Shown: one piece after another, positions 7,682 through 64,000 of the stretch
Position numbering within the stretch: position 1 is the stretch's first letter
How the letters are laid out: each line of letters begins with the position of its first letter
DNA from: Haliotis cracherodii
Taxonomy: Eukaryota
Reading direction: 5' to 3'
DNA length: 64,000 nt
Assembly (NCBI RefSeq): GCF_022045235.1
Contig: NW_027266266.1
Location: forward strand, 23,436,001-23,500,000
Translations under genes and position numbers: made by a program
The notes under the pieces: model-generated
Databases searched by the model: none
What the model saw: the letters and a program-made list of their open reading frames with translations, nothing else
Told to the model about the DNA's origin: nothing

Positions 7682-8598
7682 TTAAGCGTCGTTTTTGTTG
7701 GAGGTGAAGACTCTCTTGATTAGACTGATGAAGCGGGACAGCAAGGCTCTCAGGAAGGACTGGGGTGGGAGGGGTTGTGTGTCTTCCTCACGGCCGAGAT
7801 CGATCTCCACAAAGTCGGTGTCAACCATAATGACGTGGCCGGTGATGTTGACAGAAACAGAGACAGGGGCTGGGTCGGGGACAGAGGTGTAGGAGGTGGG
7901 GAGGGTGGACAGGGGTTCAGGGTGGTACACACAAGGACGCTGGTGGGGAGGGAAGTGGAAAAAGAGAAATGATGAGACAAACGTGATACTGATACTAGTG
8001 ATAGGTAGGGTGCGGTGTATCTTTAGTTAAGATAGTGGTAATACAGTAGGTTACGGAACATCAACACTTTGACAAACTGAGATTTAGACAAGGATCTGTT
8101 GTAAAAGTTGGTTATATTCTACAACCCTAGCACACCTACTCGACGTGGGACAGGAGTGGCAGCAGGGGTGAAAGTCTGGTGAAACATCCTCTCTGTGTGG
8201 GGGAGAAGTGAAAATAAATAAAACATGTACACTCTTATTTACACTGTAAAGTCATTAAAAACGTAAGCTTGTAAGTATATACCATATAGGTCTATATATA
8301 TAAATCTATACACGTTCGTGTAAGTTGTATTTATTTATTTCGTTCTATTCGTTAGTGGGCTTTTCACCTGGGGCAGAACGAAATCACTATTTATGTAAGC
8401 ATTGGCCATTGAAGAAATTGAAGTACATAGAAGAAATATAAAATGCGAGGAAGCGGTTTAGTATATCTTGAGAAACGTTGAAGTACGTTGAGATTTCTAT
8501 AGGCCTAGTTAAAGACTTTAGTGATGAGACCTTGGCGAAACGTAATCATCATGAAACTGTGACACATTGGTACCTTGAACACAGCTACTTGACTGCAT
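7682..8598 (-). CDS. Array gene copy 1, 3 coding exons (8574-8598, 8140-8192, 7682-7939), predicted 111-aa unknown protein
   Basis: aaacATG start; CAAG|gtacca..ttttcacttctcccccacacag|AGAGG (phase 1); CGA|gtaggt..ttccacttccctccccaccag|CGT (phase 0). The joined frame is open to TAA. Confidence 0.7.
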
Positions 8599-8677
8599 GT
8601 TTAAAAAACTCAAGCGATGCTCAAAATCCAAGGCAGATTATAGATTGAGAACAAAGAGACAGCAGATGCGGCAACAT

Positions 8678-8746
8678 AAAATGGCGTCGTTTTGCTGATA
8701 TCGGTAGCTTGGCAACGATCGGCACCAACGGAAGGGAGATAACTCT
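8678..8746 (-). promoter_or_regulatory. Putative promoter: YY1-like AAAATGGCG, RFX X-box-like GGTAGCTTGGCAAC, AAGGGAGATAACTCT motif
   Basis: Cluster 80-150 bp upstream of the predicted ATG; the three motifs are identical in all 9 visible copies. Confidence 0.5.
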
Positions 8747-8951
8747 CAGTTTCAAAGTATAAGTTAATACCGCTAAATTGATGTGGCGTTACCTGTATTT
8801 AATATTCTATGACAAATTAATTCATAGTCGAATTAATATATGAGTGTCCACTTAAGGATTTGTGAACAGGTAAAGGCTACAATTATTGAATCTTTTTTTC
8901 GTGCATTCTTTTTGGAAATGTTGGGGTGCTAGATGAATGCAAACGGTTATA

Positions 8952-9690
8952 GGGCGGGATGTTTTCCCTACAAAGGATTGTCCAGTTACAGTCAATTTTA
9001 TAAACTACACCTTTAGGTTCTTGGCGTTTAGTTGTGTTTCTGCCGTTGTCCCTTCTTAGAGAACTGAGTGAGGTGGATCTGGTGAAGTCGGGGTCAATAT
9101 TGGGTTGCTGTTTGGGGAGGCGGCTGATGATGAGGGGCAATCCTATTTAGGTGAAACATCCCGCCCCATCAACACCAGAATCAAAGAGCACAAAACTTCA
9201 ACCATCAAATCCGAGAGTAAATCAGCCATTCGGACCACATCAGCAACTGCCCTAATTACAACACAAACCTCCAAAATCCTCTCCAACAACCTCCAGGACT
9301 TCACAAAAAGCAAACTAAGAGAAGCAGTCCACATTCGCCGCCACAACCATCAATCAACAGAGATCAAGGCCATTTCATCCTATCCGCCTACTGTGAACTC
9401 ATTAAGCAATAGTGACTCCTCCTATATATACTTATCCTGTTTAATTGGCTTCCTGTCTCATCGGCTTCCTTATCATGTGTATTATTTAACTTACTTATGT
9501 TTATCTCTTTCATGTATGCAATTGTTTGTTACTGTTAATCCTCCACCTTCTATATATATTTTGTACCATGTTCATTATTCAGCCTTGCTTGACAACGGTA
9601 TAAGGATCTATACCGAAACGTCGATGTTACAGTAAAATAAAGAAGTTGTTATCCATAATTTGTGTGTACATTGTCATCCGTCAACTTCTA
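8952..9690 (+). mobile_element. Penelope-like element 3' fragment (GIY-YIG endonuclease) with 5' inversion
   Basis: Plus strand: GQSYLGETSRPINTRIKEHK..KSAI..KLREAVHIRRHN. Minus strand 8952-9133: EPKGVVYKIDCN/GQS..GKTSRP. Copies at ~16180, 23160, 28090, 33025, 37957, 42886, 47833 and 54563. Confidence 0.85.
9585..9623 (+). ncRNA. Degenerate minimal hammerhead-ribozyme-like motif of the Penelope 3' region
   Basis: TTGACAA-C-GGTATA-aggatc-TATACC-GAAA-CGTC: variant core box, 6-bp helix II, GAAA and GTC site. Helix I pairing is poor. Confidence 0.45.
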
Positions 9691-9693
9691 AGT

Positions 9694-9973
9694 GAGTGAG
9701 TGAGTGAGTGAGTGAGTTAGGTTTGACGAAGCTTTTAACAGTATTCCAGTATTATCACGGCGTGTCAGCTTAATGTGGGAGGAAACCCGAAGTGATGAGG
9801 GTCTCAGGCGTTTACCACTTCGGTGAAACTCACGAGCACGGGTATGGTGCTGACAAACCTAGAAACATAATCGGGGCGAACCGGTATTCGAACCCACAAT
9901 CATAGGTTTCTTGCGTTCCCAAAGGACGCAACTGTGCACAGCGAAATGCGGCGACTTAGACGCCTGGGCCACC
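9694..9973 (-). mobile_element. tRNA-derived SINE with (ACTC)n tail and 12-bp TSD caacttctaagt
   Basis: Minus-strand A-box TGGCCCAGGCGTCTAAG and B-box GGGTTCGAATACC; TSD at 9682-9693 and 9974-9985. Co-amplified at ~16900, 23823, 28754, 33688, 38620, 43549, 48558 and 55283; partial copy at 12310-12434. Confidence 0.85.
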
Positions 9974-10014
9974 CAACTTCTAAGTAATGCTTATCGAACA
10001 ATTCCCTCAAAACA

Positions 10015-11100
10015 TATATATATGTATTGATAATTCCTTGCGCGGCCGTCAATCTGACGTATTATATGCATGTGTATATATCTATCCTGAGGGATCTAGC
10101 TCGTATTACATTTTATCATATAATGGGTAGGTTTCTCGGCAGGATAAAGCCAACGGATAAAAACGATATCCGTTGGGGTCATATGCGGATAGAGATGCAA
10201 ATATCAAAGGTCAAGTAGGGACTTATTTTCACTGTAAATATACAAACATGGCGTCGTCCTTGTCATTCGGCGATCGAGTCAGAATTAACCATCGGGAATC
10301 GGGATAAACTACAGGGATAATTGTTATCATTATCAAAAGAACAGTCTAATATACTGAAAATCAGTGTCTAACTGTAATGTAGCTAAGGCATTTTATAAGT
10401 TTTGGCAACTTTGGAGATATAAATTTCGCGAACAATTTTGCGAGGGCACATCTGTGTTTATAGACCTCTGCGGCTTGAAACCTTCTCCTCAAATTAAAAT
10501 AGTGGGATTTGGCCGAAATATGTTTGAATTGTTACCTTGTTTCGTTTTGTCGCTTTGCGTACATCTGACTACACTTCTTAACTATGACAGGACAGACCGA
10601 CTGTCAACATCGTCTGACCGTGGCCGTGACGTCTCATAGACTAGGGTTAGAGTAGCTTCCCTTTGACAAAGGGCAGTTACTCTAGCGGACAGACCGATGG
10701 ATTGCCGCGAAAGGCAATTAAAAACAATAGTTGTTTTGAGTATATGTTGCTTTCGCCACTGTATAAGAAAGAGATTTCAGCTGTAACTATATTGGCTACT
10801 GTCACTGTCCGACTGACACATCACCCTGTGACGTAATAAATATTAATGCGCGCTTTCAAGGAAAACTCGCAATGTTTCGGTAATGTTTGTGAAAGAGGGA
10901 AAGCGATTTTAAAGCACAGAATTAAAGAATGACATTATATGATAAAGAGGTTATCACGCTTGTGTGTTTGGGGATGGTAAATATCCTGTATTAGGAATAA
11001 ATACTATGTATTTAGCTCGCCAAGGCTCGCTAAATACAATGTTTATTCCCAATGCAGGATATTTACCATCCCCAAACACACAAGCGTGATAACCTCTATT
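10015..11100. mobile_element. Unit-private non-coding insertion with palindromes (Crypton-like or MITE-like, unclassified)
   Basis: Absent from the other complete units. Contains a 152-bp hairpin (10946-11097) and an 18-bp-arm inverted repeat (10648-10684). 10112-10300 is duplicated at 4890-5077. Confidence 0.5.
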
Positions 11101-11109
11101 TATCTGTTG

Positions 11110-11330
11110 ATTGTTAAAATGGCATCACTATATTTCCAAACAGTTTGTTACACATTTTATCAGAATTAAGAGATGTTATTGTTATTTGTGGTGGAGACTT
11201 TAATGCCGCAACAGGAACGAAGTCTGATTTTGGAGAAGATGACATTGTTGAGCTTAAAACTACAACTCGGTTGTTTTTGTTGAACTTCTGTTCAAGATCT
11301 AGCCATCTTTCATCACCTTCAATGAAACAG
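11110..11330 (+). mobile_element. LINE APE-endonuclease fragment
   Basis: VIVICGGDFNAATG motif; its 3' part is shared with ~49995-50070 and ~56712-56790. Confidence 0.65.
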
Positions 11331-13133
11331 TGATAGATTGTGGCTTGTGAGACAAAATTGGTCATGTGATCCTGTAAGAGCCTGTTTTGTCTATGAATTA
11401 AACAGGTTTTATATTTACCGAATGAAATGTTTACTTTATTAGTCCTCGAAATTGGTGGCTACTTTCTTTGGCCTTTCAGTGCATTTTAGTAGGAGTTGAT
11501 ATAGCCTATTTATCTGATATACCCAGCGTTAGAAATTGGCACTAGTCCTGTGGTCCTTGCCAAACTGAAGAAGAGTTGGATTTTCATTTTGATGACAGTG
11601 AGTAGTGATAGTGCTTGCGGGGATGTGCACTACAAATGCTTGCGTTGATAGTACATGTTTGTATATGCATGGATTCAATGTAATCTGGACCCGTGAAGAT
11701 CCGGGGTAGAATAGGTCTTCAGCAACCCATGCTTTCCGTAAAAGGCGACTATGCTTGTCGTAAGAGGCGAATAACGAGATCGGGATCTCTTTGCTTGCCG
11801 ATGCATAGTAACGTAATGGTATCAAATGGATATCAAGTTTTGATAGTTGAAACGAAAAAACTAACACTGCAGGAAACGTTACAAATGCAGAGGATCATTT
11901 ACATTATACAGGAATATGTAAGGTAACATTTAATATCCATTGCGATGTACCCACCCGTGAAGATCCGGTGAAGAATAAGTCTTCAGCAAACCATGCTTGC
12001 CATAAAAGGCCACTGTGCTTTCGTAAAAGGCGACTAATGGGATCGAGTGGTCAGGATCGTTGATGCATGTCATCGTATCCCAATTTCGTGGATCGATGCT
12101 CACAGTATCAATCACTGGATGGTCTGGTCCAGACTCGATTATTTGCAGACGGCTGTCATATAGCTGGAATATTGCTGAGTGTGGCGTTAAACAACAAACA
12201 AACAAGCGTTCAAGAGGCAACTAACGAGGATCGGGTGGTCAAGATTGCTGACTTGGTTGATGCATGTCTTTGTATGCCAATTGCGTTGATCAATGCTCAT
12301 GATGTCAATGCTGACAAAGCTAGAAACATAATCGGGGCGAACCGGGAATCGAACCCACAATCATAGGTTTCTGGCGTGGCAAAGGGACGCAACTCTGCAC
12401 AGCGAATCGCGGCTCCTTAGGTGACTGGGCCCACCCAACTTTTAAGTTATGCTTATGGAACAATTCCTCTCAAACCTTGTGAATTTATAATACATCTACT
12501 ATGAATCCAAGAACGCAGAAACAGGAAAAATATGCCAATTGCGTTGATCGATGCTCATGATGTCAATCATTGGATTGTCTTGTCCAGACTCGATTATCAA
12601 CATACGTCATATAATACCGTACATCATATAGCTGGAATTTTGCTGAGTGCGGCGTTGAACAACAAACAAACAAAAAATTCTACAAAAACTATGTTTGGTC
12701 AATAAAATGTTAGATAGGACAATTGTCACTTGTGATGGCTATGACAGAAGCTTCAAGTTTTTCAAAGCAGAAACTATTGAGGTTGAACAGTGTTGAAAAT
12801 TTCCCATTTTATTTACTCTCGTAAACTGAAAATATACATTGATATCTGTGACCACATGGAAGTAAGCTGTATCACGCTGGCTTGAATATGATATCAAGTC
12901 ATGATCACACAAACCAGTGACTGAAAGCATGAGCAAGAATCTCTTGTGGCCAGCAATGGATACCAAGGACCTATATACTTTGTGGAATTCCTAGTTTCAT
13001 ACAGGGTTCATTTAGAATGGTGACAAACCTTCTTTAATGTAGATATTCCATTAGAAGTGTCATTATGGTCTGATCGCATTCTATTATTAAAGAAGTGTGA
13101 TTTAATAGTTACAGTCAGGCTTGGTTTGTCAAG

Positions 13134-13400
13134 TAGGGCTGGGACGGGTACCTGGGTCAGGTGGGTACTGAGTAGGATCCGGGTACCCACAGGAATACCC
13201 GGACCCGTGGTTAGTCACGTGATATATTGTTTCATGAAAAAATTATCTATGGTTACACTACAAGTCACTAATATTCGCATTTCTTTCTGAATATGAACCC
13301 ATTCCTTCTGATTTTTCATATGGTTGAATAAAGTTAAAACTTTAGTGTATAAATGACCAGATTGTTCAATACATGCATCTCATACATTTTGCCAGGGATA
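13134..13400. mobile_element. hAT-type MITE, right end deleted
   Basis: Left TIR tagggctgggacg follows ttgtcaag; the sequence jumps to tacctcatga at ~13401. Confidence 0.75.
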
Positions 13401-14881
13401 TACCTCATGATGTATTAACCTATTTGGTTATTAGATCTAACTTCGACTTACTGCCAGACAAGAACCAGAGTTCTGTAGCATCGTTTTAGGATGTTATTCA
13501 CGCTTTTGATAACATAGGAAGCACTAACATTGATAAAATGTAACAGCAAACAACAGTTTGAACAACAAAAACATTTATTTATACAACTGAAACCATATGG
13601 AAATAATTAACAAGACGAAAAGTTAATGACTCCAACAAAATATCCTGGAACTTGTTCCAAGGAAAGCTTTAAACATTGTTGCTGGAGGTGAAGACTCTTT
13701 TGACCACTCGGATGACACGGGACATCATGGCTCTCAGGAAGGACGGCTGGGAGGATTTGTGTTTCTTCCTCACTGCCTAAATCTCAAATAAGTCAGTCTC
13801 AAGTTAGTGTCAACCATATTATTGTCATGACCATCACAAAGATTGTATCAATTTATTTATGACTTATGAAAGCTAGGAAATAATTAGCAAGGAAGAAATA
13901 TTTCCTATATATTTCCGAATTGTATTTGAATAGTACAGTACACAAATTATTATCAAAATTATCCTATAAACTGTAATTAGTTCTGCAGATATACAGTATA
14001 CCAGTATATTATTGACATGTTTCACCTTATTCAATTCAATGTTTTGGTAAGAAATCATTTGGGAACTTCATAGCATGCTGTTACCGAGCAACCATAATAA
14101 CATGGCCTGTGATGTTCCACAAAATCAGCATCAAGAGCACATTAAATCCATTTTTGTTTCAAGACCAGGGAGACAGGTGCTGAAAATCATGTCCAGGTCT
14201 TATGGCCCATAGTCTACTGAGTTAGGACTTCTCTTCAAAAACTTTCCTGATACATCCCTATTCATGTTCTTACCATCCCTCTTTTAAACACAATGTTCGA
14301 AGTTTTTTCGGGGAAATAATTGTCCTCAAATAAAGTACTGAGCTCGCATTATATTTTTTTTTATTCCATATATATACTAGCATATATAAACACTCGGATT
14401 ATAAATCTTTGAGGGGTTATTATTGACTGTTCTATGAAATTTGATCATTTCAACTGGCAAATCTGAAAATAGATTGGCTGAAGAGTGGCACACCAGTTAG
14501 TGTTCGCTTGTCACACCCTGACCAAGGTTCGATTTCTAACATGAGTAATTTGTGAAACCTATTATTGGACTACGATATCTAACTATTGCATACGATATTC
14601 GCCAAGTTGTCACAGACCTAAGGAGATCTACAAATGTAGAATCAGAATGCAGAATTGTGTAATGTGACTCGTAGCTTTAGGTTATGTTTGAGTTTTTTCC
14701 ATACGTAAGGCGGCTCCTACACTAATAAAAGAATAAAGCAACCAACAACAATTTAAACAACAACAAAATTTACTCATCATCCTAATGAAAGAACAACCAA
14801 ATGGGAATGATAACTAATTTGCCAAAGTGTCCATACAAAAAAAGGAAAGGTGACTTCTCAGATTGTTACAAAAATGTCACT

Positions 14882-15826
14882 TTAAGCGTCGTTTTTGTTG
14901 GAGGTGAAGACTCTCTTGATCAGACTGATGAAGCGGGACAGCAAGGCTCTCAGGAAGGACTGGGGTGGGAGGGGTTGTGGGTCTTCCTCACGGCCGAGAT
15001 CGATCTCCACAAAGTCGGTGTCAACCATAATGACGTGGCCGGTGATGTTGACAGAAACAGAGACAGGGGCTGGGTCGGGGACAGAGGTGTAGGAGGTGGG
15101 GAGGGTGGACAGGGGTTCAGGGTGGTACACACAAGGACGCTGGTGGGGAGAGAAGTGGAAAGAGAAAAATGATGAGACAAACGTGATACTGAAACTAGTG
15201 ATAGGTAGGGTGCGGTGTATCTTTAGTTGGAACATACAGTAGGTTATGGAACATCAACACTTTGACACACTGAGATTTAGACAAGGATCTGTTGTAAAAG
15301 TTGGTTATATTCCACAACCCTAGCACACCTACTCGACGTGGGACAGGAGTGGCAGCAGGGGTGAAAGCCGGGTGAAACATCCTCTCTGTGTTGGGGAGAA
15401 GTGAAAATAAAAAAAACATGTACTCTTGTTTACACTGTAAAGTCATTAAAAACGTAAGCTTGTAAGTATATACCATATACCGGTAGGTCTATATATATCT
15501 ATACACGTTCGTGTCAGTTGTATTTATTTATTTCGTTCTATTTGTTTATGTGCTTTTCACCTGGGGCAGGACAAAATCACTCTTTATGTAAGCATTGGCC
15601 ATTGAAGAAATTGAAGTACATAGAAGAAATATAAAATGCGAGGAAACGGTTTTAGTATATCTTGAGAAACGTTGAAGTACGTTGATATTTCTATAGGCCT
15701 TGTTATAGACCTTAGTGATGAGACTTTGGCATCAACCCGCTAGCCGATTATACAACCACACGGTGAAACGTAATCATCATGAAACTATGACAAATTGGTA
15801 CCTTGAACACAGCTACTTGACTGCAT
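14882..15826 (-). CDS. Array gene copy 2 (exons 15802-15826, 15333-15385, 14882-15139)
   Basis: Same splice sites and open frame; one T>P change. Confidence 0.7.
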
Positions 15827-17630
15827 GTTTAAAAAACTCAAGCGATGCTCAAAATCCAAGGCAGGTTGTAGATTGAGAACAAAGAGACAGCAGATGCGGC
15901 AACATAAAATGGCGTCGTTTTGCTGATATCGGTAGCTTGGCAACGATCGGCACTAACGGAAGGGAGATAACTCTCAGTTTCAAAGTATAAGTTAATACCG
16001 CTAAATTGATGTGGGGTTACGTTTATCTAATATTCTATGACTAATTAATTCATAGTCGAATTAATATATGAGTGTCCACTTTAGGATTTGTGAACAGGAA
16101 AAGGATACAATTATTGAATCTTTTTTTCGTGTATTCTTTTTGGAAATGTTGGGGTGCTAGATGAATACAAACGGTTATAGGGCGGGATGTTTTCCCTATA
16201 TAGGATTGTCCAGTTACAGTCAATTTTATAAACTACCCCTTTAGGTTCTTGGCGTTTAGTTGTGTTTCTGTCGTTGTCCCTTCTTAGAGAATTGAGGGGG
16301 GTTGATCTTGCGAAGTCGGGGTCAATATTGGGGTTGAAGGAGGCGGCTGATGATATGGGGCAATCCTATGTAGGTGAAACATCCCGCCCAATGAACACCA
16401 GAATCAAAGAGCACAAAACTTCAACCATCAAATCCGAGAGTAAATCAGCCATTCGGACCATATCAGCAACTGCCCTAATCACAACATGAACCGCCCAAAT
16501 CCTCTCCAACAACTCCAGGACTTCACAAAAAGCAATCAAAGAGAAGCAGTCCATATTCGCCGCCACAACCATCAATCAACAGAGATCAAGGCCATTTCAT
16601 CCTATCCGCCTACTGTGAACTCATCAAGCAATAGCGATCCCTCCTATGTATACTTATCCTGTTTAATTGGCTTCCTGATCATGTGTATTATTTAACTTAC
16701 TCATGTTTATCTCTTTCATGTATGCAATTGTTTGTTACTGTTAATCCTCCACCTTCTATATATATTTCGTACCATGTTCATTATTCAGCCTTGCTTGACA
16801 ACGGCATAAGGATCTATACCGAAACGTCGATGTTACAGTAAAATAAAGAAGTTGTTATCCATAAATTGTGTGTACATTGTCATCCGTCAACTTCTAAGTG
16901 AGTGAGTGAGTGAGTGAGTGAGTGAGTGAGTGAGTGAGTGTGAGTTGGGTTTAACGCAGCTTTTAACAGTATTCAAGTTATATCGCGGCATGTCAGCTTA
17001 ACGTGGGAGGAAAGCCCGAAGAGATGCAGGTCTCAGGCGTTTACCACTTCGGTGAAACCCACGAGCACGGGTATGGTGCTGACAAACCTAGAAAAATAAT
17101 CGGGGCGAACCGGGATTCGAACCCACAATCATAGGTTTCTGGCGTGCCAAAGGGACGCAACTCTGCACAGCGAATCGCGGCTCCTTAGGCGACTGGGCCC
17201 ACCCAACTTTTAAGTTATGCTTATCGAACAATTCCCTCAAAACCTTGTGAATTTATGATACATCTACTATGAATCCAAGAACGCAGAAACAGGAAAAATA
17301 TGCCAATTGCGTTGATCGATGCTCATGATGTCAATCACTGGATTGTCTTGTCCAGACTCAATTTTTAACATACGTCATATAATACCGTACATCATATAGC
17401 TGGAATTTTGCTGAGTGCGGCGTTAAACAACAAACAAACAAAAAATTCTACAAAAACTATGTTTGGTCAATAAAATGTTAGATAGGACAATTGTCACTTG
17501 TGATAGCTATGACAGAAGCTTCAAGTTTTTCAAAGCAGAAACTATTGAGGTTGAACAGTGTTGCAAATTTCCCATTTTATTTACTCTCGTAAACTGAAAA
17601 TATACATTGATATCTGTGACCACACGGAAG

Positions 17631-20193: not shown

Positions 20194-20468
20194 GAAGTAA
20201 GCTGTATCACGCCGGCTTGAATATGATATCAAGACATGATCACACAAACCAGTGACTGAAAACATGAGCAAGAATCTCTTGTGGCCAGCAATGGATACCA
20301 AGGACCTATATACTCTGTGGAATTCCTAGTTTCCTACAGGGTTCATTTGGAATGGCGACAAACCTTCTTTAATGAAGATATTCCATTAGAAGTGTCATTA
20401 TAGTCTGGTCGCATTCTATTAATAAAGAACTGTGATTCAATAGTTACAGTCAGGCTTGGTTTGTCAAG

Positions 20469-20843
20469 TAGGGCTGGGACGGGTACCGAGTAGGATCCGG
20501 GTACACACAGGACTACCCGGACCCGTGGTTAGTCACGTGATATATTGTTTCATGAAAAAATTATCTATGGTTACACTACAAGTCACTGATGTTCGCATTT
20601 CTTTCTGAATATGAACCCATTCCTTCTGATTTTTCATATGGTTGAATAAAGTTAAAACTTTAGTGTATGAATGACCAGATTGTTCAATACATGTATCTTA
20701 ATACGTTTTGCCAGGGATATGCTGAAAATGTTCTGATTCGGACATTTTGTGACATCTCCTGAGACTTACAGTGGGTACGCGGGTAGTGTCGGGTTATAGG
20801 GGGTGGGTACCCGGGTAGTAGATTTGGACTCGTCCCAGCCCTA
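20469..20843. mobile_element. hAT-type MITE with TIR TAGGGCTGGGACG and perfect 8-bp TSD ttgtcaag
   Basis: TSD at 20461-20468 and 20844-20851; empty sites at ~5970, ~51885 and ~62265. Confidence 0.9.
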
Positions 20844-22310
20844 TTGTCAAGCACTTTACTCATTTCAAAATCATCCCTGTCCTCAGAGGCGGAATTCATT
20901 CTTGATGTTATTTCATAAAAAAACGTCAATGATTGTGCATAGAAATAAAAAAGACGCGCTAATCTATACCTCATGATGTATTAACCTATTTGGTTATTAG
21001 ATCTAACTTAGACTTACTGCCAGACAAGAACCAGAGTTCTGTAGCATCGTTTTAGGATGTTATTCACGCTTTTGATAACTTAGGAAGCACTAACATTGAT
21101 CAAATATAACAGCAAACAACAGTTTGAACAACAAAAACATTTATTTATACAACTGAAACCATATGGAAATAATTAACAAGACGAAAGGTTAATGACTCCA
21201 ACAAAATATCCTGGAACTTGTTCCAAGGAAAACTTTAAACGTTGGTGCTGGAGGTGAAGACTCTTTTGACCACTCGGATGACACGGGACATCATGGCTCT
21301 CAGGAAGGACGGCTGGGAGGATTTGTGTTTCTTCCTCACTGCCAAAATCTCAAATAAGTCAGTCAAGTTAGTGTCAACCATATTATTGTCATGACCATCA
21401 CAAAGATTGTATCAATTTATTTATGACTTATGAAAGCTAGGAAATAATTAGCAAGGAAGAAATATTTCCTATATATTTCCGAATTGTATTTGAATGGTAC
21501 AGTACACAAATTATTATCAAACTTATCCTATAAACTGTAATTAGTTCTGTAGATATACAGTATACCAGTATATTATTGACATGTTTCACCTTATTCAATT
21601 CAATGTTTTGGTAAGAAATCGTTTGGGAACTTCATAGCATGCTGTTACCGAGCAACCATAATTACATGGCCTGTGATGTTCCACAAAATCAGCATCAAGA
21701 GCACATTAAATCCATTTTTGTTTCAAGACCAGGGAGACAGGTGCTGAAAATCATGTCCAAGTCTTATGGCCCATAGTCTACTGAGTTAGGACTTCTCTTC
21801 AAAAACTTTCCTGATACATCCCTATTCATGTTCTTACCATCCCTCTTTTAAACACAATGTTCGAAGTTTTTTCGGGGAAATAATGGTCCTCAAATAAATT
21901 ACTGAGCTCGCATTATATATTTTATTATTCCATATGTGTGTGTGTGTGTGTGTGTGAGTGTGTGTGTGTGTGTGTGTGTATTGTGGGGTTATTATTGAGT
22001 GTTCTATGAAATTTGATCATTTCAACTGGCAAAATCTGAAAACAGATTGGCTGAAGGGTGGCACAGCAGTTAGTGTTCGCTTGTCACACCCTGATCACAC
22101 GGTACGATTTCTAACATGAGTTATTTGTGAAACCTATTATTGGACTGCGATATTTAACTATTGCATACGATATTCGCCATGTTGTCACAGACCTAAGGAG
22201 ATCTACAAATGAAGAATCAGAATGCAGAATTGTGTAATGTGACTCGAAGCATTAGGTTATGTTTGAGTTTGTTCTATACATAAGGAGGCTCCTACACTAA
22301 TAATAGTGTG

Positions 22311-53000: not shown

Positions 53001-53280
53001 CCAAGTTGTCACAGACCTAAGGAGATCTACAAACGTAGAATCAGAATGCAGAATTGTGTAATGTTACTTGTAGCTTTAGGTTATGTTTGAGTTTGTTCCA
53101 TACGTAAGGAGGCTCCCATATTAATAATAGAATAAAGCAACCAACAACAATTTAAACAACAACAAAATTTACTAATCATGCTAATGAAAGAACAACCAAA
53201 TGGGAATGATAACTAATTTGCCAAAGTGTCCATACAAAAAAAGGAAAGGTGACTTCTCAGATTGTTACAAAAATGTCACT

Positions 53281-54210
53281 TTAAGGGTCGTTTTTGTTGG
53301 AGGTGAAGACTCTCTTGATAAGACTGATGAAGCGGGACAGCAAGGCTCTCAGGAAGGACTGGGGTGGGAGGGGTTGTGTGTCTTCCTCACGGCCGAGATC
53401 GATCTCCACAAAGTCGGTGTCAACCATAATGACGTGGCCGGTGATGTTGACAGAAACAGAGACTGGGGCTGGGTCGGGGACAGAGGTGTAGGAGGTGGGG
53501 AGGGTGGACAGGGGTTCAGGGTGGTACACACAAGGACGCTGGTGGGGAGGGAAGTGGAAAGAGAAAAATGATGAGACAAACGTGATACTGATACTAGTGA
53601 TAGGTAGGGTGTGGTGTATCTTTAGTTAGGAAAGTGGTAATACAGTAGGTTATGGAACATCAACACTTTGACACACTGAGATTTAGACAAGGATCTGTTG
53701 TAAAAGTTAGTCATATTCTGTTTCTACAACCCTAGCACACCTACTCGACGTGGGACAGGAGTGGCAGCAGGGGTGAAAGCCTGGTGAAACATCCTATCTG
53801 TGTGGGGGAGAAGTGAAAATAAATAAAACATGCACACTCTTTTTTACACTGTAAAGTCATTGATTAAAAACGTAAGCTTGTAATTATATACCTTATAGGT
53901 ATCATCTTATACACGTTCGTGTCAGTTGTATTTATTTTATTCTATTTGTTAGTGCGCTTCACCCGGGGTCAGGACAAAATCACTATTTATGTGAGCATTT
54001 GCCATTGAGGAAATTTAAGTACCAAAAAGAAATATAAAATGCGAGGAAACGCGTATAGTACGTTGAGATTTCTACAGGCCTAGTTATAGACCTTAGTGAT
54101 GAAACATTAGCATCAACCTGACGGTAGCCGATTATATAACCACAGGGTGAAACATAATCAACATGAAACTGTGACACATTGGTACCTTGAACACAGCTAC
54201 TTGACTGCAT
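53281..54210 (-). CDS. Array gene copy 9 (exons 54186-54210, 53745-53797, 53281-53538), diverged unit
   Basis: Introns carry multiple indels relative to the central copies, but exon lengths and splice sites are unchanged; E>D, P>Q and A>P changes. Confidence 0.7.
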
Positions 54211-55627
54211 GTTTAAAAACTCAAGCGATGCTCAAAATCCAAGGCAGGTTGTAGATTGAGAACAAAGAGACAGCAGATGCGGCAACATAAAATGGCGTCG
54301 TTTTGCTGATATCGGTAGCTTGGCAACGAGCGGCACTAACGGAAGGGAGATAACTCTCAGTTTCAAAGTATAAGTTACTACCGCTAATTTAATGTGGCGT
54401 TACGTGTATTTAATATTCTATGACTAATTAATTCATAGTCGAATTAATATATGAGTGTCCACTTTAGGATTTGTGAACAGGAAAAGGCTACAATTATTGA
54501 CTCTTTTTTTTCGTGTATTCTCTTTGGAAATGTGTGGGTGCTAGATGAATACAAACGGTTATAGGGCGGGATGTTTTCCCTATATAGGATTGTCCAGTTA
54601 CAGTCAATTTTATAAACTACACCTTTAGGTTCTTGGCGTTTAGTTGTGTTTCTGTCGTTGTCCCTTCTTAGAGAATTGAGGGAGGTTTATCTGGTAAAGT
54701 CGGGGTCAATATTGGGGTTGAAGGAGGCGGCTGATGATATGGGGCAATAACATGTCAGTGAAACATCCCGCCCAAATCAACACCAAAATCAAAGAGCACA
54801 AAACTTCAACCATCAAATCCGACAGTAAATCAGCCATTCAGAACATATCAGCAACTGCCCTAATCATAACATGAACCGCCCAAATCCTCTCCAACAACTC
54901 CAGGACTTCACAAAAAGCAAACTAAGAGAAGCAGTCCACATTCGCCGCCACAACCATCAATCAACAGAGATCAAGGCCATTTCATCCTATCCGCCTACTG
55001 CGGACTCAATAAGCAATATCGACCCCTCCTATGTATACTTATCTTGTTTAATTGGCTTCCTTATAATGTTTATTATTTAACTTACTCATGTTTATCTCTT
55101 TCATGTATGCAATTGTTTGCTACTGTTAATCCTCCACCTTCTATATATATTTTGTACCATGTTCATTATTCAGCCTTGCTTGACAACGGTATAAGGATCT
55201 ATACCGAAACGTCAATGTTACAGTAAAATAAAGAAGTTGTTATCCATAAATTGTGTGTACATTGTCATCCGTCAACTTTAAGTGAGTGAGTGGGAGTTGG
55301 TTTGACGAAGCTTTTAACAGTATTCAAGTTATATCGCGGCATGTCAGCTTAACGTGGGAGGAAATCCCGAAGTGATGCAGGTCTCAGGCGTTTACCACTT
55401 CGGTGAAACCCACGAGCACGGTATGGTGCTGACAAAGCTAGAAACATAATCGGGGCGAACCGGGATTCGAACCCACAATCATAGGTTTCTGGCGTGCCAA
55501 AGGGACGCAACTCTGCACAGCGAATCGCGGCTCCTTAGGCGACTGGGCCCATCCAACTTTTAAGTTATGCTTATCGAACAATTCCCTCAAAACCTTGTAA
55601 ATTTATAATACATCTACTATGAATGCA

Positions 55628-56790
55628 AGACCGCAGAAACAGCAAAAATAATGTAATATTATATGGAGTGCCTGAATTACAACATGAATCATATATGGTG
55701 TGTAAGGAGAAAGTTCTGGAAGTACTGAAGATAGAGAAGAAATTCCCCCGCTCAATTCCAGAGATGTAGAAACGTGCTCATCGTATGCCGACGAAGAAGC
55801 CTAATAAACCTTCTCGTGAAGATGCTGCACTGGGACGACAAAATGCAAGCTGAGTCAATGTAGATCGTTCTTAAAGGTAAAGGATATGGCATCTCTAATG
55901 ACTTGACTTTAAATCAGAGACAGGAATTACTAAAATGCAGAACAGACGAACCAGACACACGGTTCTACTACAAAGAAGGGAAATTAGTGAGGGAATTCCG
56001 AAGAGAGGAGAGATACTAGAAAAGATGAAGCTGCACAGAAGTGAGTGAGTGAGTGAGTGAGTGAGTTGGGTTTAACGCCGCTTTTAACATTATTCCAGTT
56101 ATATCACGGCGTGTCAGCTTAATGTGGGAGGAAAGCCCGAAGTGATGCAGGTCTAAGACGTATACCACTTCGGTGAAACCCACGAGCACCGGGTATGGTG
56201 CTGACAAACCTAGAAACATAATCGGGGTGAACCGGGATTCGAACCCATAATCATAGGTTTCTGGCGTGTCCAAGGGACGCAACTCTGCACAACGAATCGC
56301 GGCGCCTTAGACGACTGGGCCACCCGTGCCCCAAAGCCGCACAGGAAAGCATATCTGGAGGCACAGAGGGTGAGAGAGAAGAAAGACAACAGGATGAGAG
56401 ACGGGATACGCGCTCGAGGTCACAGAGGTCAGCAGTAGGGGGACAGAGATAAGGGTGTGGCAAGGGCCTATACGCTGATTTTACTGCTCATCAAGAGAAC
56501 CCATCAAGGGAGAGAAGCGACAGTAATAATAGCTTCATTAACTTTCTCTTCTGGAATGTTTCAGGCATAATATATGAGTTAACAGATAATGACTTTATGT
56601 GAACAAATTTGATATAATTGTTGTAACCGAAACTTGGTTGGATAATGTAGAGGATGTGAAGGTCACTTTCACAGACTTTAACCTTTATATTTAAGATGCT
56701 GATAGACTGTCTAAGATGACATTGTTGAGCTTCGAACCACTAATCAATAGTTTTTGTTGAACTTTTGTTCAATATCCAGCCATCTTTCAT
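55628..56790 (+). mobile_element. LINE fragment (duplicate of 48905-50070) with nested SINE ~56041-56332
   Basis: Near-identical sequence with the same nested SINE. Confidence 0.8.
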
Positions 56791-57239
56791 CACCTTCAAT
56801 GAAACAGTGATAGATTGTTGCTTGTGAGACAAAATTGGTCATGTGATGCTGTAAGATCCTGTTTTGTCTATGAATTAAACAGGTTTGAAATTTACCGAAT
56901 GAAATTTTTACTTTATTAGTCCTCGAAATTGGTGGCTACTTTCTTTGGCCTTTCAGTGCATTTAAGTAGGAGTTGATATAGCCTACTTGTCTGATATACC
57001 CAGCGTTAGAAATTGGCACTAGTCCTGTGGTCCTTGCCAAACTGCACAATAGTTAAGGTATCATAAGGATTAGTAGAAATTTACCATTTTTAAGGGTTTT
57101 GCTATATGTTATCATTATAAGTTATATCACAAAAACTGTTACTTTCTACCGCTGTATACCCATATTAGAAATAATGGAACCAAGTTGTTCAGGCTAACGT
57201 GCGAGTGATTCAGCCAATTGGCTGCCCCACATACCACTA

Positions 57240-60200
57240 CCCAGATAGCATTAAGACGTTGGCCCAACGTCGGCAATGGTTGGCAGTGTCGGATTTTATA
57301 CGTTGGCCCAACGTTGTTACAACGTTAGGTCGCATTTCGTAAATTATTTCCAAGGGGCGCTACTCGTAATTGACAGCTTCACAGAGAAGGCGCTGTGTTT
57401 TTTGCGCCTCTCAACGAGCAGACGACGAGACACAAGCACACGCTCGATCATCGGAATAGTTTTCCTCGTATATATAGAGGTAAGTGTTTAATTAATGTCT
57501 TGTATGATGTACAAACAGTACCCGAGAATAAAACAACCATTGTTCATTCAGAAATATCAACACGAGTAATTATTTTCCAGAAATTGAGAACACCACCAAC
57601 TTCATGACCCGAAGCCAAATAGGAATATATGTCACTCTGATTGCTTGCAAATATAGCATACTATTACTAGCATACCCCAAAAAAAGTCGCGCTTGTCCGC
57701 ATCATAAAGTTTGTCGTGATCGTGAGGACAAGTTTGTGCAAAGAAATGTGCATCGTGTCGCGTAAGTTCAGTCGGAGTGTCGATCTCAGCTGTTTCTGAC
57801 AGTTGGAGGTCACCGGACAGCGAGCGACCACATGACTACCTAAACAAATACTGACTGTGGAATTTGTAAATGAATACTGGTTGTTTCTATTCTCGTGGAA
57901 GTTTAAAAATAACAAGCAAACTCAACTGAAAAGGTCAATTTCGTTCTCGCTTGTGCAATTTTACGGTCAAAAAGATCAACTAAACTGAACAATTCAGAAC
58001 GAGGCTTCTAAAACTCAAAGCATTCCGTGTACATGATAAAATAATACCATGCAGACTCCTACTGATCAGTGTACGGAGCTTTTCCCTGTTGTCGGCAACA
58101 TCGCGAGTTCAGTTTTCGATCACAAATCAGTGGTCGTGGGATTGTGTTTGTTGTTATTTGAAAGTGATTGATAATGGCATAATCGCTTTTTTATTTGTAC
58201 ATACCGCGGGGGGGTAATGGTTAAAACGAAGGGAACGTATTGGATTAGATTGGGTACGAAATAGTCATGAAATCATTTCCGATTGAGAATAATATATTTC
58301 AATAAATATTTAGAGCTGTTTCAACTTCATCTGGTGTTGTCTCCGATATCGCATTTTGTTAATTTTTCCAACGTTACTATCTTTGTAAATGTTAGAACTT
58401 ATATAGGTATCCTGGCATATTTATATGGAAAATATTAATGTTTATATTTTTAAAAATAAAATAGAATCTAAAATCACGATTTTAATTTAATACCGGTGTT
58501 AACACTTCTTTAGTTATTGGAAGGTCAATTCATAATCATATTCAACATTCATGCTTCCAACATGGGAACTCTTTATTTGGCAATATATATTTTTCATTTA
58601 TTTGTTTATTTTTCACATCAGATTTTAGAAACTTTGCCAACATATGCTATTTTGCATTATTTTTTACTTGATCACAAGTTTGTGAGGTACAGCAGAAAGG
58701 TAAAGTTATTGCTTTTGAATAATTACAGTTGATTTCTCTTGGCTGATAAAAACTATTTGCCAAAACTAACACCACTCACATCATACTGTTAGTAAATGAG
58801 ACTTATCTCTACTGATTTATTTGAGAATGTGATACTTTGAGGTTTCTATTTTTCTTTCAGGTGGAGTTTACAGTATTGTTGAAGCATATTTGTTTACATC
58901 ACATCACAGCCAGAAAGGTATGCATGATGCAATAATATATTCAAACATCTTCAATAATAAAAATTTAGATGATTCTTATTTAATTATACCCCCAATCTAA
59001 AAGGGCGGGTAATAAAGTTTATCTGTCCGTCCTTCCTTCCAAAGACATTTTTTTGTGTAAGTGCAGTGCAAAGTTTGATTTTGATAAGTATATTTTCTGA
59101 AAAAATATGATTCTTTAAGTGTTTTTAACTTAAAATATTTCTTTTTATTTCAACCTTTGTGCGACCTATCACTTGAACACTACTTCATGGATTCCTTTCC
59201 AATTATGGGTACAGTTTCTACACCCACAGGAGAGGTGCAGTGCGAAGTTTGGTTTTGATTAGTGTATTTTCTTAAATATAGCTTTTGTTATGTTTTGAAC
59301 TTAAAATATTTTTTACTTCAACAATTGTGCTACCTATAACTTGAGAACTTGAGATCTACTGGAGAACATGGATTCTGTCCAAATTTAAGGAACACTTTTA
59401 TATTAAAAAATGGGGAGATGCACAGCAAAGGTTGATTTTGATATGTGTATTAGATGCACAGCAGAGGTTGATTTTGATATGTGTATTTTATTAAACAATA
59501 TAATTTTTTTTAAATGTTTTGAACTTAGAATGTTTTTTTTAATTCAACATTGTGCGACCTTTAACTTGAGAACTGCTGCATGGATTCTTTCCAAATTTAA
59601 GAAACACTTTCTATACAAATAAAAGAGGTACAGTGAAAATGTTGATTTTGATATGTGTATTTTCAGAAAAAAATATGATTTGTTTCATGTTTTGAACTTA
59701 GAATTATTTTCTTTTGTGAGACCTATAACTTGATGTGCAGTGCAAAGTTTGATTTTTATAATTATGCTTTTTCTATGTTTTGAACTTTGAAAAATGAATG
59801 AGTCGTTACCCTTGTTCATTTAGTGTTAATAGCTTTTCTGCCTATCTATGATCCAAGAGCATCATGGTATTACTGTCTATGCTACCTTCCCAGTTTTAGC
59901 AGTATTAACAGTTTTATGACTTGGATGGGTGGAGGTAGGACTGCTGAGACTTTTTTTCATACATCAAATTATTATTTGGGGGAAGGCAACAATTTTTTTA
60001 TGTAAAAAATATGTCCCTTGCCTTATCATTTTTATTATAATTGTGTCATTGTTTTATTCAGTTACCAAGGCACAAGAAGAGACCATGGATACAGTTGAAG
60101 ATCATCCCTGTGATAAGTTCTTCTGACATCTGAGGATTGAAAAGGCTCCTCAACCACTTAGCCCAAGTTCTGACTTGTCATGTAACAAATAAATAAAGGT

Positions 60201-60918
60201 CACCGAAACCAGAATTCTATTGTCATTTTGTTGCTGTCATCATGTTTTTTAATAGATCAAGTAAATTGATCATAGGACATCCGATGCATGGACTATTTTG
60301 CTTGTCTCAGCGTTGCTCGTCAATGCGGAATGTATGGGGTAAGGCCATGAAAAATTAAACGTTTCAATTTGTGGCAGGCTTATTGTCTGATGATTTTTAA
60401 TTTGCAAACTCGTAGGAAAATCATTTATCTTTTAATAGTGTTGAAACATTTGTGAACAATTTGCACATAGTCTTGAAAATGGTTTTGGAAAGTAAATATT
60501 ATAGCACCAAATTGCATTTGTAATTTAAAACAATTTCAATTTTTTCTTGGCCGTATTTCAAACTATGTATGCCGAGGTACCTTGCCAGAAGAGAGCGCAT
60601 TTCATTGGCATGTTCTTTCATGGAAAGAGTTCAGAGTGAATCTAGCTTGCAGAAATGTATTGCTTGTTACCTGATGTCTTAACTAGATTGGTACAAACAT
60701 TTCAGGCTGCCTGGGAGGTATAGTGAGGAATAAAACAGACGTAATCCAACGTTGGGTCAGCGTTGTCTATCAACGTTGGCCCAACGTCATTTTGACCGGC
60801 GGCCCAACGTTGGGCCAACGTTGGCTGAACATCGTTGACCCAACGTTGGCCCAACGTTGGGCCGCCGGTCAAAATGACGTTGGGCCAACGTTGGCCCAAC
60901 GTCTGACTGCTATCTGGG
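57240..60918. mobile_element. Non-autonomous DNA transposon, TIR CCCAGATAGCA, TA TSD, subterminal caacgttggcc repeats (animal EnSpm/CACTA-like)
   Basis: Empty site ccactaatgag at ~50515; here ccac-TA|cccagatagca...tgctatctggg|TA-atgag. No transposase ORF found. Confidence 0.85.
58984..59790 (+). mobile_element. Nested HINE/Helentron-like element with degenerate ~200-bp internal tandem repeats
   Basis: Starts ttataccccc..aagggcgggtaataaag, then a short ctgtccgtcc microsatellite, then recurring gtgcagtgcaaagtttgattttgata..tgttttgaactta..gacctataacttga blocks. Confidence 0.5.
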
Positions 60919-63795
60919 TAATGAGTGAAATCATCTAATGGTGACCTCATGTTTTCAAGAGAAATCTCATCTACAGAACACATTTGACAGAACACATTTT
61001 TTCAGAAGAGTTGGATTTTCATTTGGATGACAATAAGTAGTGATAATGCTTGTGTGCATGTGCACTACAAATGCTTGCGTTGATAGTACATGTTTGTATA
61101 TGCATGGATTCAGTGTAAACTGGACCCGTGAAGATCCGGGTCAGAATAGGTCTTCAGCAATCCATGCTTGCCGTAAAAGGAGACTATGCTTGTCGTAAGA
61201 GGCGACTATCAAGACTTGATAGTTGAAACTACAAAACTAACACCGCAGGAAATGTTACAAATGCAGAGGTTCATTTACATTATAATGGAGTATGTAAGGT
61301 GACATTTAATATCCGTGATGATGTACCCACCCGTGAAGATCTGGGGTAGAATAGGTCTTCAGCAAACCATGCTTGCCATAAAAGGCCACTGTGCTTTCGT
61401 AAAAGGCGACAAATGGGATCGGGTGGTCAGGATCGTTGACTTTGTTGATGCATGTCATCGTATCCCAATTTCGTGGATCAATGCTCATAATATCAATCAC
61501 TGAATTGTCTGGTCCAGACTCGATTATTTGCAGACCCGCCGTCATGGAGCTTGAATATTGCTGAGCGCGGCGTTAAACAACAAACAAACAAACAAGCTTT
61601 CAAGAGGCAACTTCGGGTGGTTTAGGTTGCTGACTTGGTTGATGCATGTCTTTGTATGCCAATTGCGTTGATCGATACTCATGATGTCAATCACTGGATT
61701 GTCTTGTCCAGACTCGATTATTTACATACGTCATATAGCTGGAATATTGGTGAGTGTGGCGTTAAAGAACAAACAAAACAAAAAATCAACAATACTAAGT
61801 ATGGCCAAAGAATAGTTGGACTTTCTTCAATAAAATGTCAGATAGGACAATTGTCACTTGTGATAACTATGACAGAAGCTTCAAGCTTTTCGAAGCATAA
61901 ACTATTGAGGTTGAACAGTGTTGCAAATGTCTCATTTTATTTACTCTCGTAAGCTGAAAATATACATTGATATCTGTGACCACACGGAAGTAAGCTGTAT
62001 CACGCTGGCTTGTACATGATATCAAGTCATGATCACACAAACCAGTGACTGAAAGCATGAGCAAGAATCTTGTTTTTGGCTCTTATGGCCAGCTATGGAT
62101 ACCAAGGACCAATCTACTCTGTGGAATTCCTAGTTTCCTACAGGTTCATTTGGAATGGCGACAAACCTTCTTTAATGTAGACATTCCATTAGAAGTGTCA
62201 TTATGGTCTGGTCACATTCTTTTAATAAAAAGCTGTGATTCAATAGCAACAGCCAGGCTAGGTTTGTCAAGCGCTTTAGTCATTTCAAAATCATCCCTGT
62301 CCTCAGAGGCGGAATTCATTCTTGATGATATTTCATAAAAAATAATGTCAATGATTGTGCATACTATATAAAAAGATGCCCTAATCTATACCTCATGATG
62401 TATAAACCTATTTGGTTATTAGATCTAACCTAGACTTACTACTAGACAAGAACCAGAATTCTGTAGCATCGTTTTAGGATGTTATTCACGCTTTTGATAA
62501 TTTAGGAGGCACTAACATTGATAAAATATAACAGCAAAAAACAGTTTGAACAACAAAAACATTTATTTATACAACTGAAACCATATGGAAATAATTAACA
62601 AGATGAAAAGTTAATGAACCCAACAAAATATCCTGGAACTTGTTCCAAGGAAAGCTTTAATTAAACGTTTTTGCTGGAGGTGAAGGCGCTTTTGACCACT
62701 CGGATGACACGGGACGGGATATCGTGCTTCTCAGGAAGGACGGCTGGGAGGGTTTCTGTTTCTTCCTCACTGCCAAAATCTCAAATAAGTCAGTCTCAAG
62801 TTAGTGTCAACCATAATATTGTCATGACCATCACAAAGATTTTATCAATATATTCATAGGTAAGTTATGATAGCTAGGATATAATTAGCAAGGAAGAAAT
62901 ATTTCCTAAATATAGTATGTAGTATAGTATTGACCTGTTTCACCAAATTCAATTCAATGTTAGGAAGCCTGTTTTGGTAAGAAATCGTTTGAGAACTTCA
63001 TAGCATACTGTTACTGAGCATAATAACATGGCCTGTGATGTTCCACAAAATCAGCATCAAGAGCACATTAAATACATTTTTGTTTCAAGACCAGGGAGAC
63101 AGGTGCTAAAAATCATGTCCAGGTCTTATGGCCCATAGTCTACTGAGTTAGGACTTCTCTTCAAAACTTTCCTGATACATCCCTATTCATGTTCTTACCA
63201 TCCCTATTTTAAACACGTGTTTGAATTCTGGGCGGGGGAAATAATTGTCCTCAGGTTTGTACAAACAAATTGCTGAGCTCACATTATATATTTTTTTATT
63301 CCATATATACTTACACACACTCGGCTTGTAATCTTTTGAGGGGTTTTCATTTAGTGTTCTATAATATTTGAACATTTAAACTGGCAAATCTGAAAACAGA
63401 TTGACTGAAGGGTGGCACAGCAGTTAGTGTTCGCCCATCACACCCTGATCAAGGTTTGATTTCTGGTTCGAGTAACTTGTGAAACCTATTGTTGTAACTA
63501 TTGCATACGATATTCGCCAAGTTGTCACAGAACTAAGGAGATCTACAAACGTAGAATCAGAATGCAGAATTCTGTAATGTTACTTGTAGCTTTAGGTTAG
63601 GTTTGAGTTTGTTCCATACGTAAGGAGGCTCCTACACTAATAATAGAATAAAGCAACCAACAACAATTTAAACAACAACAAAATTTACTAATCATGCTGA
63701 TGAAAGAACAACCAAATGGGAATGATAACTAATTTGCTAAAGTGTCCATAAAAAAAGAGGAAAGGGGACTTCTCAGATTGTTACAAATTATCACT

Positions 63796-64000
63796 TTAAG
63801 CGTCGTTTTTGTTGGAGGTGAAGACTCTCTTGATCAGACTGATGAAGCGGGACAGCAAGGTTCTCAGGAAGGACTGGGGTGGGAGTGGTTGTGTGTCTTC
63901 CTCACGGCCGAGGTCGATCTCCACAAAGTCGGTGTCAACCATAATGACGTGGCCGGTGATGTTGACAGAAACAGAGACAGGGGCTGGGTCGGGGACAGAG
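63796..64000 (-). CDS. Array gene copy 10, exon 3 partial (cut by the window end)
   Basis: Open frame to TAA at 63796-63798; synonymous changes plus one A>T. Confidence 0.65.
   Translation of the reverse strand, partial: SVPDPAPVSVSVNITGHVIMVDTDFVEIDLGREEDTQPLPPQSFLRTLLSRFISLIKRVFTSNKNDA

Follow-up and report, generated by a model that had tools for sequence, protein, structure and literature searches.

A large abalone-restricted family of three-exon genes, amplified in tandem in Haliotis cracherodii, with purifying selection on its main coding exon

The subject of this report is a 64,000-nucleotide stretch of the black abalone genome (Haliotis cracherodii; NCBI RefSeq assembly GCF_022045235.1, contig NW_027266266.1, here chromosome 3 or C3, positions 23436001-23500000), called the window throughout, which holds a tandem array of ten units. 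Our data show that the repeated unit is a genuine protein-coding gene restricted to abalones, with three coding exons and a disordered product of about 111 residues; that its main coding exon (exon 3) is under purifying selection; and that the family to which it belongs has no fewer than 118 exon-3-type loci, spread over at least 13 contigs, with RefSeq members in four Haliotis species. Taken as a whole, an abalone-restricted coding gene that forms a large amplified family and whose main exon is selected is the best explanation, and we assign it a probability of roughly 0.85; the array is accordingly regarded as a gene array rather than a satellite. A preliminary description of the same DNA had proposed a lineage-specific, multicopy gene under purifying selection. 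That interpretation is largely right, but the gene is already annotated and the family is far larger than one array; nothing is overturned, as the gene models are already public.

In the first copy of the array, exon 1 (8598..8574, 25 nt, beginning at aaacATG), exon 2 (8192..8140, 53 nt) and exon 3 (7939..7682, 258 nt including the TAA) lie on the minus strand and join in frame into a protein of 111 amino acids, which exactly reproduces the three-exon coordinates, the joining and the product of the preliminary description. The splice sites of the two introns, GTACCA/ACAG and GTAGGT/CCAG, are nearly invariant among 40 chromosome 3 copies, the exception being CTAG at one exon-3 acceptor. All eight complete copies in the window are free of exon indels and premature stops, as had been claimed, and they differ by the same set of amino acid exchanges (T/P, R/C, A/P, P/Q, I/V and E/D). 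Exon 1, which had been thought doubtful, is real: its junction with exon 2 (8574/8192) is present in a spliced contig, and the N-terminal pattern M-x-S-x-Y-V/T-Q recurs, with the three-exon layout, in paralogs at about 40% identity. The layout is retained in the paralogs on contigs C56 and C80, and a phase-0 AG acceptor with a polypyrimidine tract lies ahead of exon 3 in all paralogs examined. The window gene shares with the annotated Haliotis family a phase-1 intron followed by a phase-0 intron and four common motifs.

The gene had been called hidden; RefSeq, however, already carries the identical 111-residue model for window copies and for H. rufescens under the name 'uncharacterized protein', and six of the eight complete window copies translate into proteins letter-identical to public NCBI/UniRef records of a 111-residue cluster (P0005, P0013 and P0016). 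Exon 3 alone retrieves 111-residue proteins in NCBI/UniRef, one cluster comprising H. cracherodii records such as XP_071093186.1 and another H. rufescens records (XP_048251859.1 / LOC124142137 and XP_048251860.1 / LOC125379976); XP_071093215.1 is a further H. cracherodii model. These records have the same three-exon model and the same product, but they lack the family and its size, a function, any literature and a further exon, e4, which is described below.

Self-comparison and exon BLAST within the 64-kb window, whose DNA contains no N, resolved ten units in head-to-tail order. The full 25+53+258-nt gene is present in eight of them; of the other two, one runs off the end of the window and one is without exon 3. 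The array and its gene copies are as follows.

5153..64000, minus strand: tandem array of ten units by self-comparison, running past the window end by at least one further unit
7682..8598, minus strand: gene copy 1 (exon 1 8574-8598, exon 2 8140-8192, exon 3 7682-7939; 111 amino acids)
14882..15826, minus strand: gene copy 2 (exon 1 15802-15826, exon 2 15333-15385, exon 3 14882-15139)
22311..22807, minus strand: broken copy 3 (exon 1 22783-22807, exon 2 22311-22361, 51 of 53 nt; exon 3 deleted)
26788..27738, minus strand: gene copy 4 (exon 1 27714-27738, exon 2 27239-27291, exon 3 26788-27045; protein identical to P0005)
31723..32672, minus strand: gene copy 5 (exon 1 32648-32672, exon 2 32174-32226, exon 3 31723-31980; protein identical to P0005)
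36655..37604, minus strand: gene copy 6 (exon 1 37580-37604, exon 2 37106-37158, exon 3 36655-36912; protein identical to P0005)
41584..42533, minus strand: gene copy 7 (exon 1 42509-42533, exon 2 42035-42087, exon 3 41584-41841; protein identical to P0005)
46529..47480, minus strand: gene copy 8 (exon 1 47456-47480, exon 2 46980-47032, exon 3 46529-46786; protein identical to P0013)
53281..54210, minus strand: gene copy 9 (exon 1 54186-54210, exon 2 53745-53797, exon 3 53281-53538; protein identical to P0016)
63796..64000, minus strand: copy 10, the final 205 nt of exon 3, cut by the window edge

The roughly ten-fold array with eight complete copies and one partial copy is therefore as first described, with the addition of a tenth unit, copy 3, which had been missed; its deletion takes away the end of exon 2 (2 nt), all of intron 2 and exon 3, and some 150 nt more. 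Across the window edge and beyond it, exon-3 matches lie at C3:23499796-23500053, which completes the cut unit, and at 23508277-23508534. Two classes of unit are present, namely five short units of 4,935 bp (~4.9 kb) that are 99.5% identical (22311-46528) and older long units of 6.7-10.4 kb with 91-97% identity that have inserted extra sequence in common. Our data show that the array grew stepwise, with these older, longer units beside a very recent five-fold amplification of the short unit.

Coding constraint was assessed in an alignment of 44 copies (the 8 complete ones of the window, another 32 from C3 and 4 from C12, on chromosome 12), and diversity and gaps were computed for the 35 chromosome 3 copies in which no exon is missing. 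The exons have a nucleotide diversity of 0.027-0.053, the introns and flanks one of 0.10-0.18, so that the exons are 3-6 times less diverse, and gap-bearing columns amount to 0-0.4% in exons against 20-57% in introns; a 1-nt insertion is present in only 2 of the 44 aligned copies, within the last codons. Across all exons of 32 copies of the chromosome 3 subfamily, 36 changes were synonymous and 39 non-synonymous, against an expected synonymous share of 25% (binomial p=1.6e-5). By region, the counts, with a ratio comparable to that of non-synonymous to synonymous rates (dN/dS; here omega-like ratio), were:

exon 3: synonymous to non-synonymous 29:24, omega-like ratio 0.29, p=7e-6
core, codons 53-96: synonymous to non-synonymous 14:8, omega-like ratio 0.19, p=0.00013
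exons 1 and 2: synonymous to non-synonymous 7:15, omega-like ratio 0.64, p=0.23 (not significant)

Purifying selection, as proposed in the preliminary description, thus holds for exon 3, exons 1 and 2 having no significant synonymous excess, and the suggested comparison of exon with intron divergence came out on the side of constraint, with an exon-3 ratio well away from 1. Because the five central units are 99.5% identical, they contribute almost no independent evidence, and it is the older units and the other arrays that carry the signal. Between paralogs, dN/dS is 0.25-0.71, and no frame other than the sense frame is open throughout the paralogs; those on other chromosomes, 35-65% identical, have retained it, with in-frame indels only. 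When chromosome 3 and chromosome 12 units are compared, alignment is confined to the exons and to some 150 nt ahead of the ATG. The latter stretch, which comprises the 5' untranslated region and the proximal promoter (8599..8752, minus strand), is 67% alignable with the chromosome 12 array and is the sole non-exon sequence for which this is so; a spliced contig extends to 8752.

A decayed duplicate of exon 3, e4, lies about 1.1 kb downstream of each exon 3 and matches nt 91-118 and 149-250 of that exon at ~80-86% identity. Its copies in the window are:

6350..6571, minus strand: e4 of copy 1, a decayed duplicate of exon 3 with 3' untranslated region, alternative last exon (acceptors at 6562/6561 and 6572/6571; AATAAA at 6369-6364)
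25473..25734, minus strand: e4-type duplicate of copy 4
13550-13813, 21116-21377, 30404-30665, 35338-35599, 40269-40530, 45200-45461, 52161-52431 and 62540-62810: further e4 copies

In 29 aligned copies, the e4 acceptor ..GGCAG|T is kept, one copy reading GACAG, and the frame is broken in 14 of them (by a 5-nt insertion in 5, by CGA>TGA in 8 and by a 1-nt deletion in 1); e4 was therefore rejected as a second coding exon that preserves the C-terminal helix. The only canonical AATAAA of the unit belongs to e4. Our data show that this duplicate of exon 3 is decayed and is used today as an alternative terminal exon, which carries the unit's one canonical polyadenylation signal. In a genome search, full e4 copies were found only in the arrays at 23.44, 20.22-20.35 and 19.47 Mb of C3; at 21.16 Mb, the one array whose downstream sequence was inspected, the first 3 kb contain no e4. 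Homogenization alone would treat exon 3 and e4 alike, and the contrast between an exon kept intact and a duplicate that decays within the same units therefore argues for selection on exon 3. In a tandem array, such a contrast provides an internal means of separating selection from homogenization.

Splicing was examined in contigs from four RNA-like runs, of four organisms related to H. cracherodii, aligned to 6300-9300; that these runs are RNA is a guess, as no run is on record as RNA. The small-assembly runs contain 30-44% of the 31-mers of region 7600-8700, and runs of five other organism labels contain 30-47% of the 31-mers of the gene. The joint 8192/8574, with CT..AC ends (GT..AG on the gene strand), corresponds to the predicted intron 1 and bears out the first of two junctions named beforehand. 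The second, 8140/7939 between exons 2 and 3, is not among the joints listed for the four runs; instead, joints with CT..AC ends connect exon 2 to e4 (6561/8140 and 6571/8140) and exon 1 to e4 (6561/8574), those from the exon-1 and exon-2 donors to 6561/6571 occurring in runs X1, X4 and X5. Joining exon 2 to 6561 leads to an immediate TGA and leaves 26 amino acids, and joining exon 1 to 6561 or exon 2 to 6571 leads into the e4 frame, which in part of the copies reads SFLRAMMS.. but is broken in 14 of 29. The contigs are unitigs, which break at the dense copy variants beside the exon 2-exon 3 junction, so that the missing 8140/7939 joint is weak evidence. Contig depth cannot rank isoforms. The locus is thus transcribed and spliced and exon 1 is confirmed, and the 111-residue isoform is not confirmed by reads.

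The family extends far beyond the window. In the 1.18-Gb assembly, an exon-3 DNA search gave 40 scored matches from 72 candidates, all on C3, where arrays lie at 19.47, 20.16-20.51, 21.16 and 23.44-23.51 Mb and at least 41 exon-3 matches reach at least 90% identity. The exon-3 peptide finds diverged copies (44-65% identity) on C12, C34, C80, C56, C45 and C27, and of 215 candidates obtained with a profile of ten paralogs, at least 118 are exon-3-type matches; they are distributed over 13 contigs, and a stop occurs in only 3. Many of these loci lie in tandem arrays whose 2-10-kb units are arranged head to tail. When 1.84 billion representatives and 5.8 billion proteins were searched with profiles, named relatives appeared only in Haliotis (H. 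cracherodii, H. rufescens, H. rubra and H. asinina), all 'uncharacterized', and two unnamed ENA fragments were also returned. The gene is therefore both multicopy and lineage-specific, as had been supposed from the window alone. We found no literature on ten LOC identifiers of the family, nor anything relevant on abalone orphan or tandem genes, and this large family, with its conserved exon structure and four conserved motifs, appears to be defined here for the first time. Pfam gave no match for exon 3 or for 7 and then 27 family members, a PDB profile search gave only a chance match (E=1.7), the ESM Atlas gave no usable match and Rfam gave 0 matches on the whole window.

In a tree of 44 gene segments, the window copies mix with those of the 20.22-20.35 Mb array, which has the opposite orientation, and of the 19.47 Mb array, whereas the 20.50 Mb, 21.16 Mb and C12 arrays form separate older clades. 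This interleaving implies that blocks of units have been copied or exchanged between arrays, and our data show that unit types are common to the window array and to the oppositely oriented array 3 Mb away. The latter array, on the plus strand of C3 at 20.22-20.35 Mb, is the larger of the two and belongs to the same subfamily; the copy at C3 20347028 has an exon 3 with 100% identity to that of window copy 1. Amplification, presumably by unequal exchange between units, would raise the dosage of a fast-evolving small protein.

Several observations weigh against a selected coding gene. Exons 1 and 2 are without significant coding constraint in this subfamily (0.64), and a dN/dS of 0.3-0.7 represents only moderate constraint. 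No AATAAA lies downstream of exon 3, where only AGTAAA occurs (7574-7569), contigs over exon 3 continue into intron 2, and the mature forms observed skip exon 3, the exon 2-exon 3 joint not being among those listed. Two RNA-like runs with the species label of the window (X23 and X24) hold almost none of the 31-mers of the gene, and the RefSeq models may be partly ab initio. In most tissues, the locus might mainly yield non-productive or tiny-frame RNAs (exons 1-2-e4 and 1-e4), the 111-residue protein being rare or made only in an unsampled stage and the array being chiefly a transcribed repeat. This reading, a minority possibility that deserves to be taken seriously, agrees with the fact that, past the exon 1-exon 2 junction, the only joints listed from the exon-2 and exon-1 donors lead to e4, with the 26-residue outcome of one of them, with the position of the AATAAA and with the near absence of the gene's words from the two runs just mentioned. 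It does not explain why exon 3 is under coding selection and intact in ~115 of 118 loci while e4 decays, nor does it fit arrays such as that at 21.16 Mb, the genome search having found full e4 copies in only three arrays; the breakage of unitigs beside the very junction in question and the inability of contig depth to rank isoforms also lessen its force.

An annotation artefact, in which gene conversion homogenizes the units, the exons merely look conserved and no protein is made, would be in keeping with the near identity of the five central units, with the interleaving of copies between arrays and with the absence of the exon 2-exon 3 joint from those listed. We consider it very improbable, because homogenization would affect the introns too, yet these are 3-6 times more diverse and rich in indels, and because exon 3 has a significant synonymous excess, paralogs at 35-65% identity on other chromosomes keep the frame with only the sense frame open, and the e4 duplicate decays within the same units. 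An origin of the gene within a transposable element, as internal sequence or passenger, would account for its many dispersed copies but is scarcely credible. The largest subfamily (P0033 type) does have similar copies on many contigs, and dispersed repeats and an inverted repeat resembling a miniature inverted-repeat transposable element (MITE) occur within the units; but no window open reading frame (ORF) of at least 120 amino acids matches Pfam, no ORF of at least 90 amino acids lies beside paralog L007 and only short unassigned ORFs lie beside L003 and L006, only exons and the proximal promoter are conserved between paralogous arrays, and the copies are head-to-tail tandem units rather than dispersed insertions with termini. 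Neither a transposase, reverse transcriptase or integrase nor element termini were found to accompany the gene among the window ORFs, the ORFs beside paralogs or the inter-array alignment, and the match to a transposon-internal sequence that the preliminary description had named as a possible refutation did not appear in these comparisons. Together, the evidence favours the abalone-restricted coding gene with a selected main exon.

The four motifs of the family are the N-terminal M-x-S-x-Y-V/T-Q..D..F, PLSxLP, the acidic D-x-x-[DH]-F-[VIE]-[ED]-[IV]-x-L followed by an acidic run, and S-x-[LV]-[RK]-x-x-L-S-R-V-x-x-F-[FL]-R-R-V-F; a tryptic peptide of exon 3 spans VIMVDTDFVEIDLGR. AlphaFold2 models of 7 and then 27 family sequences predict one helix at residues 86-106 (pLDDT, the predicted local distance difference test, ~83-85) and disorder elsewhere, with no secondary structure around residues 60-80 (pLDDT 51-66). 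The C-terminal helix is strongly amphipathic and basic: over 18 residues, its charge is +4 to +6 and its hydrophobic moment 0.60-0.76. No transmembrane or signal-like segment was found in five family members (maximum 19-residue Kyte-Doolittle mean 0.63-1.15), and no dibasic cleavage site ahead of the helix is conserved in the family alignment.

In the window subfamily, the third motif reads VDTDFVEIDL, and across 27 paralogs its F is invariant and [IV] at +3 is kept. The core of an LC3-interacting region (LIR) is [W/F/Y]xx[L/I/V], and that of optineurin is 178-FVEI-181, preceded by acidic or phospho-serine residues (PMC12368060). The abalone motif has the same FVEI core, flanked by acidic residues (DTD-FVEI-DL, at -1 and -3), in a region disordered in the AlphaFold2 model; the resemblance to optineurin is at the level of the motif, without homology. 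From this motif and the predicted helix, we tentatively propose, as an unlikely reading, that the protein may be a linear-motif adaptor, in which the acidic FVEI motif would be the docking site for a partner (leading candidate ATG8/GABARAP) and the basic amphipathic helix would bind a membrane or an acidic surface. Against this, [WFY]xx[LIV] motifs are common by chance. A complex prediction for a GABARAP proxy (P0155 1-117, 97% identical to the abalone exon) with residues 48-88 of P0001 scored 0.04, which counts neither for nor against binding. The abalone GABARAP gene itself lies at C16:11069759-11069992 (L051), where one exon encodes residues ~28-94 and is 100% identical to many invertebrate GABARAPs; the proxy was chosen by means of this exon.

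The same features have a second possible reading. Cationic amphipathic peptides with an anionic pro-region are a known type of precursor, and the abalone protein resembles them in having an acidic run directly upstream of an amphipathic basic C-terminal helix; it differs from them in having neither a signal peptide nor an evident processing site. A host-defence or membrane-active precursor, whose acidic segment would neutralize the cationic C-terminal peptide and which would be amplified for dosage and fast evolution, or an ampliconic germline-conflict gene, would also agree with the tandem amplification, the restriction to a single lineage and the moderate constraint. Since hydrophobic N-termini and conserved dibasic sites before the helix are missing, we hold both versions to be improbable.

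Two giant acidic proteins, P0035 (ENA, 3667 amino acids) and P0037 (Sanderia malayensis, 2043 amino acids), are mutually homologous and consist of 185-189-residue repeats with PLSxxP, TDFxFEDL plus an acidic run, and PxxxVRxxSxKVxGxxKRxF, ordered as in abalone exon 3. Against the abalone family, hhalign gives 30-76% over ~32 residues, and the HMMER E-values are inflated by the identical repeats. A still bolder speculation, which we think highly doubtful, is that more than 100 small, fast-evolving adaptors specific to abalones might each pair an optineurin-like LIR of constitutively acidic character with a membrane-binding amphipathic helix, dock or block ATG8 and possibly derive from a cnidarian repeat unit of the P0035/P0037 type. 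The hypotheses that arise from this work thus concern the LIR-like FVEI motif, the basic amphipathic helix and a competition between exon 3 and e4.

D4Z4/DUX4, TSPY and Stellate/Su(Ste) are arrays of few-kb head-to-tail units, each with a complete small gene. The abalone array likewise has the organization of a gene-bearing macrosatellite or ampliconic array, as its units of 4.9-10.4 kb contain a complete transcription unit in eight of ten cases and its transcripts are spliced. It resembles these systems in its recent within-array amplification and in the presence of several arrays per genome, and it differs from them in that its protein has no known domain and its units are 91-99.5% identical rather than near-identical throughout.

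Several other candidates were tried and set aside. An antisense ORF of 123 amino acids over exon 3 (for example 14801-15172, plus strand) has no Pfam match and is broken in copy 1 and in deep paralogs. The use of exon 3 as an internal exon with the donor TAAA|GTGACA, an idea that came from one X14 contig leaving at 7681, fails because the GT is GG in 8 copies and is absent in the chromosome 12 paralogs. The Pfam family DUF7563 (PF24444) matched only the long repeat protein P0035, none of 27 family members and nothing in the genome, and is spurious; the genome that matched it in a control was that of a haloarchaeon. P0038, a bacterial HYR repeat protein, is likewise a spurious profile match.

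The units contain further features outside the gene. Broken copy 3 lies where the old long units give way to the five near-identical short ones. The extra sequence of the long units (10013-12076, 17632-20191, 48923-51061 and 55650-61655) is 78-99% identical between units, one of which has an additional insertion of ~3.7 kb, and these inserts contain no ORF of at least 120 amino acids and no Pfam match. Each unit has one (TG)n microsatellite of 16-22 repeats between exon 3 and e4 (for example at 7165-7205, 21935-21979 and 26279-26311), which differs in length among units, and a 210-bp tandem duplication lies at 51016-51408. A 35-nt inverted repeat (8949-8983 / 9135-9169) is 83% complementary, with arms 151 nt apart, and lies ~350-570 nt upstream of the ATG. 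RNA-like contigs have strand-switch joints at this inverted repeat, and their depth at 9128-9228 is very high in four of four runs, which suggests an abundant MITE-like element.

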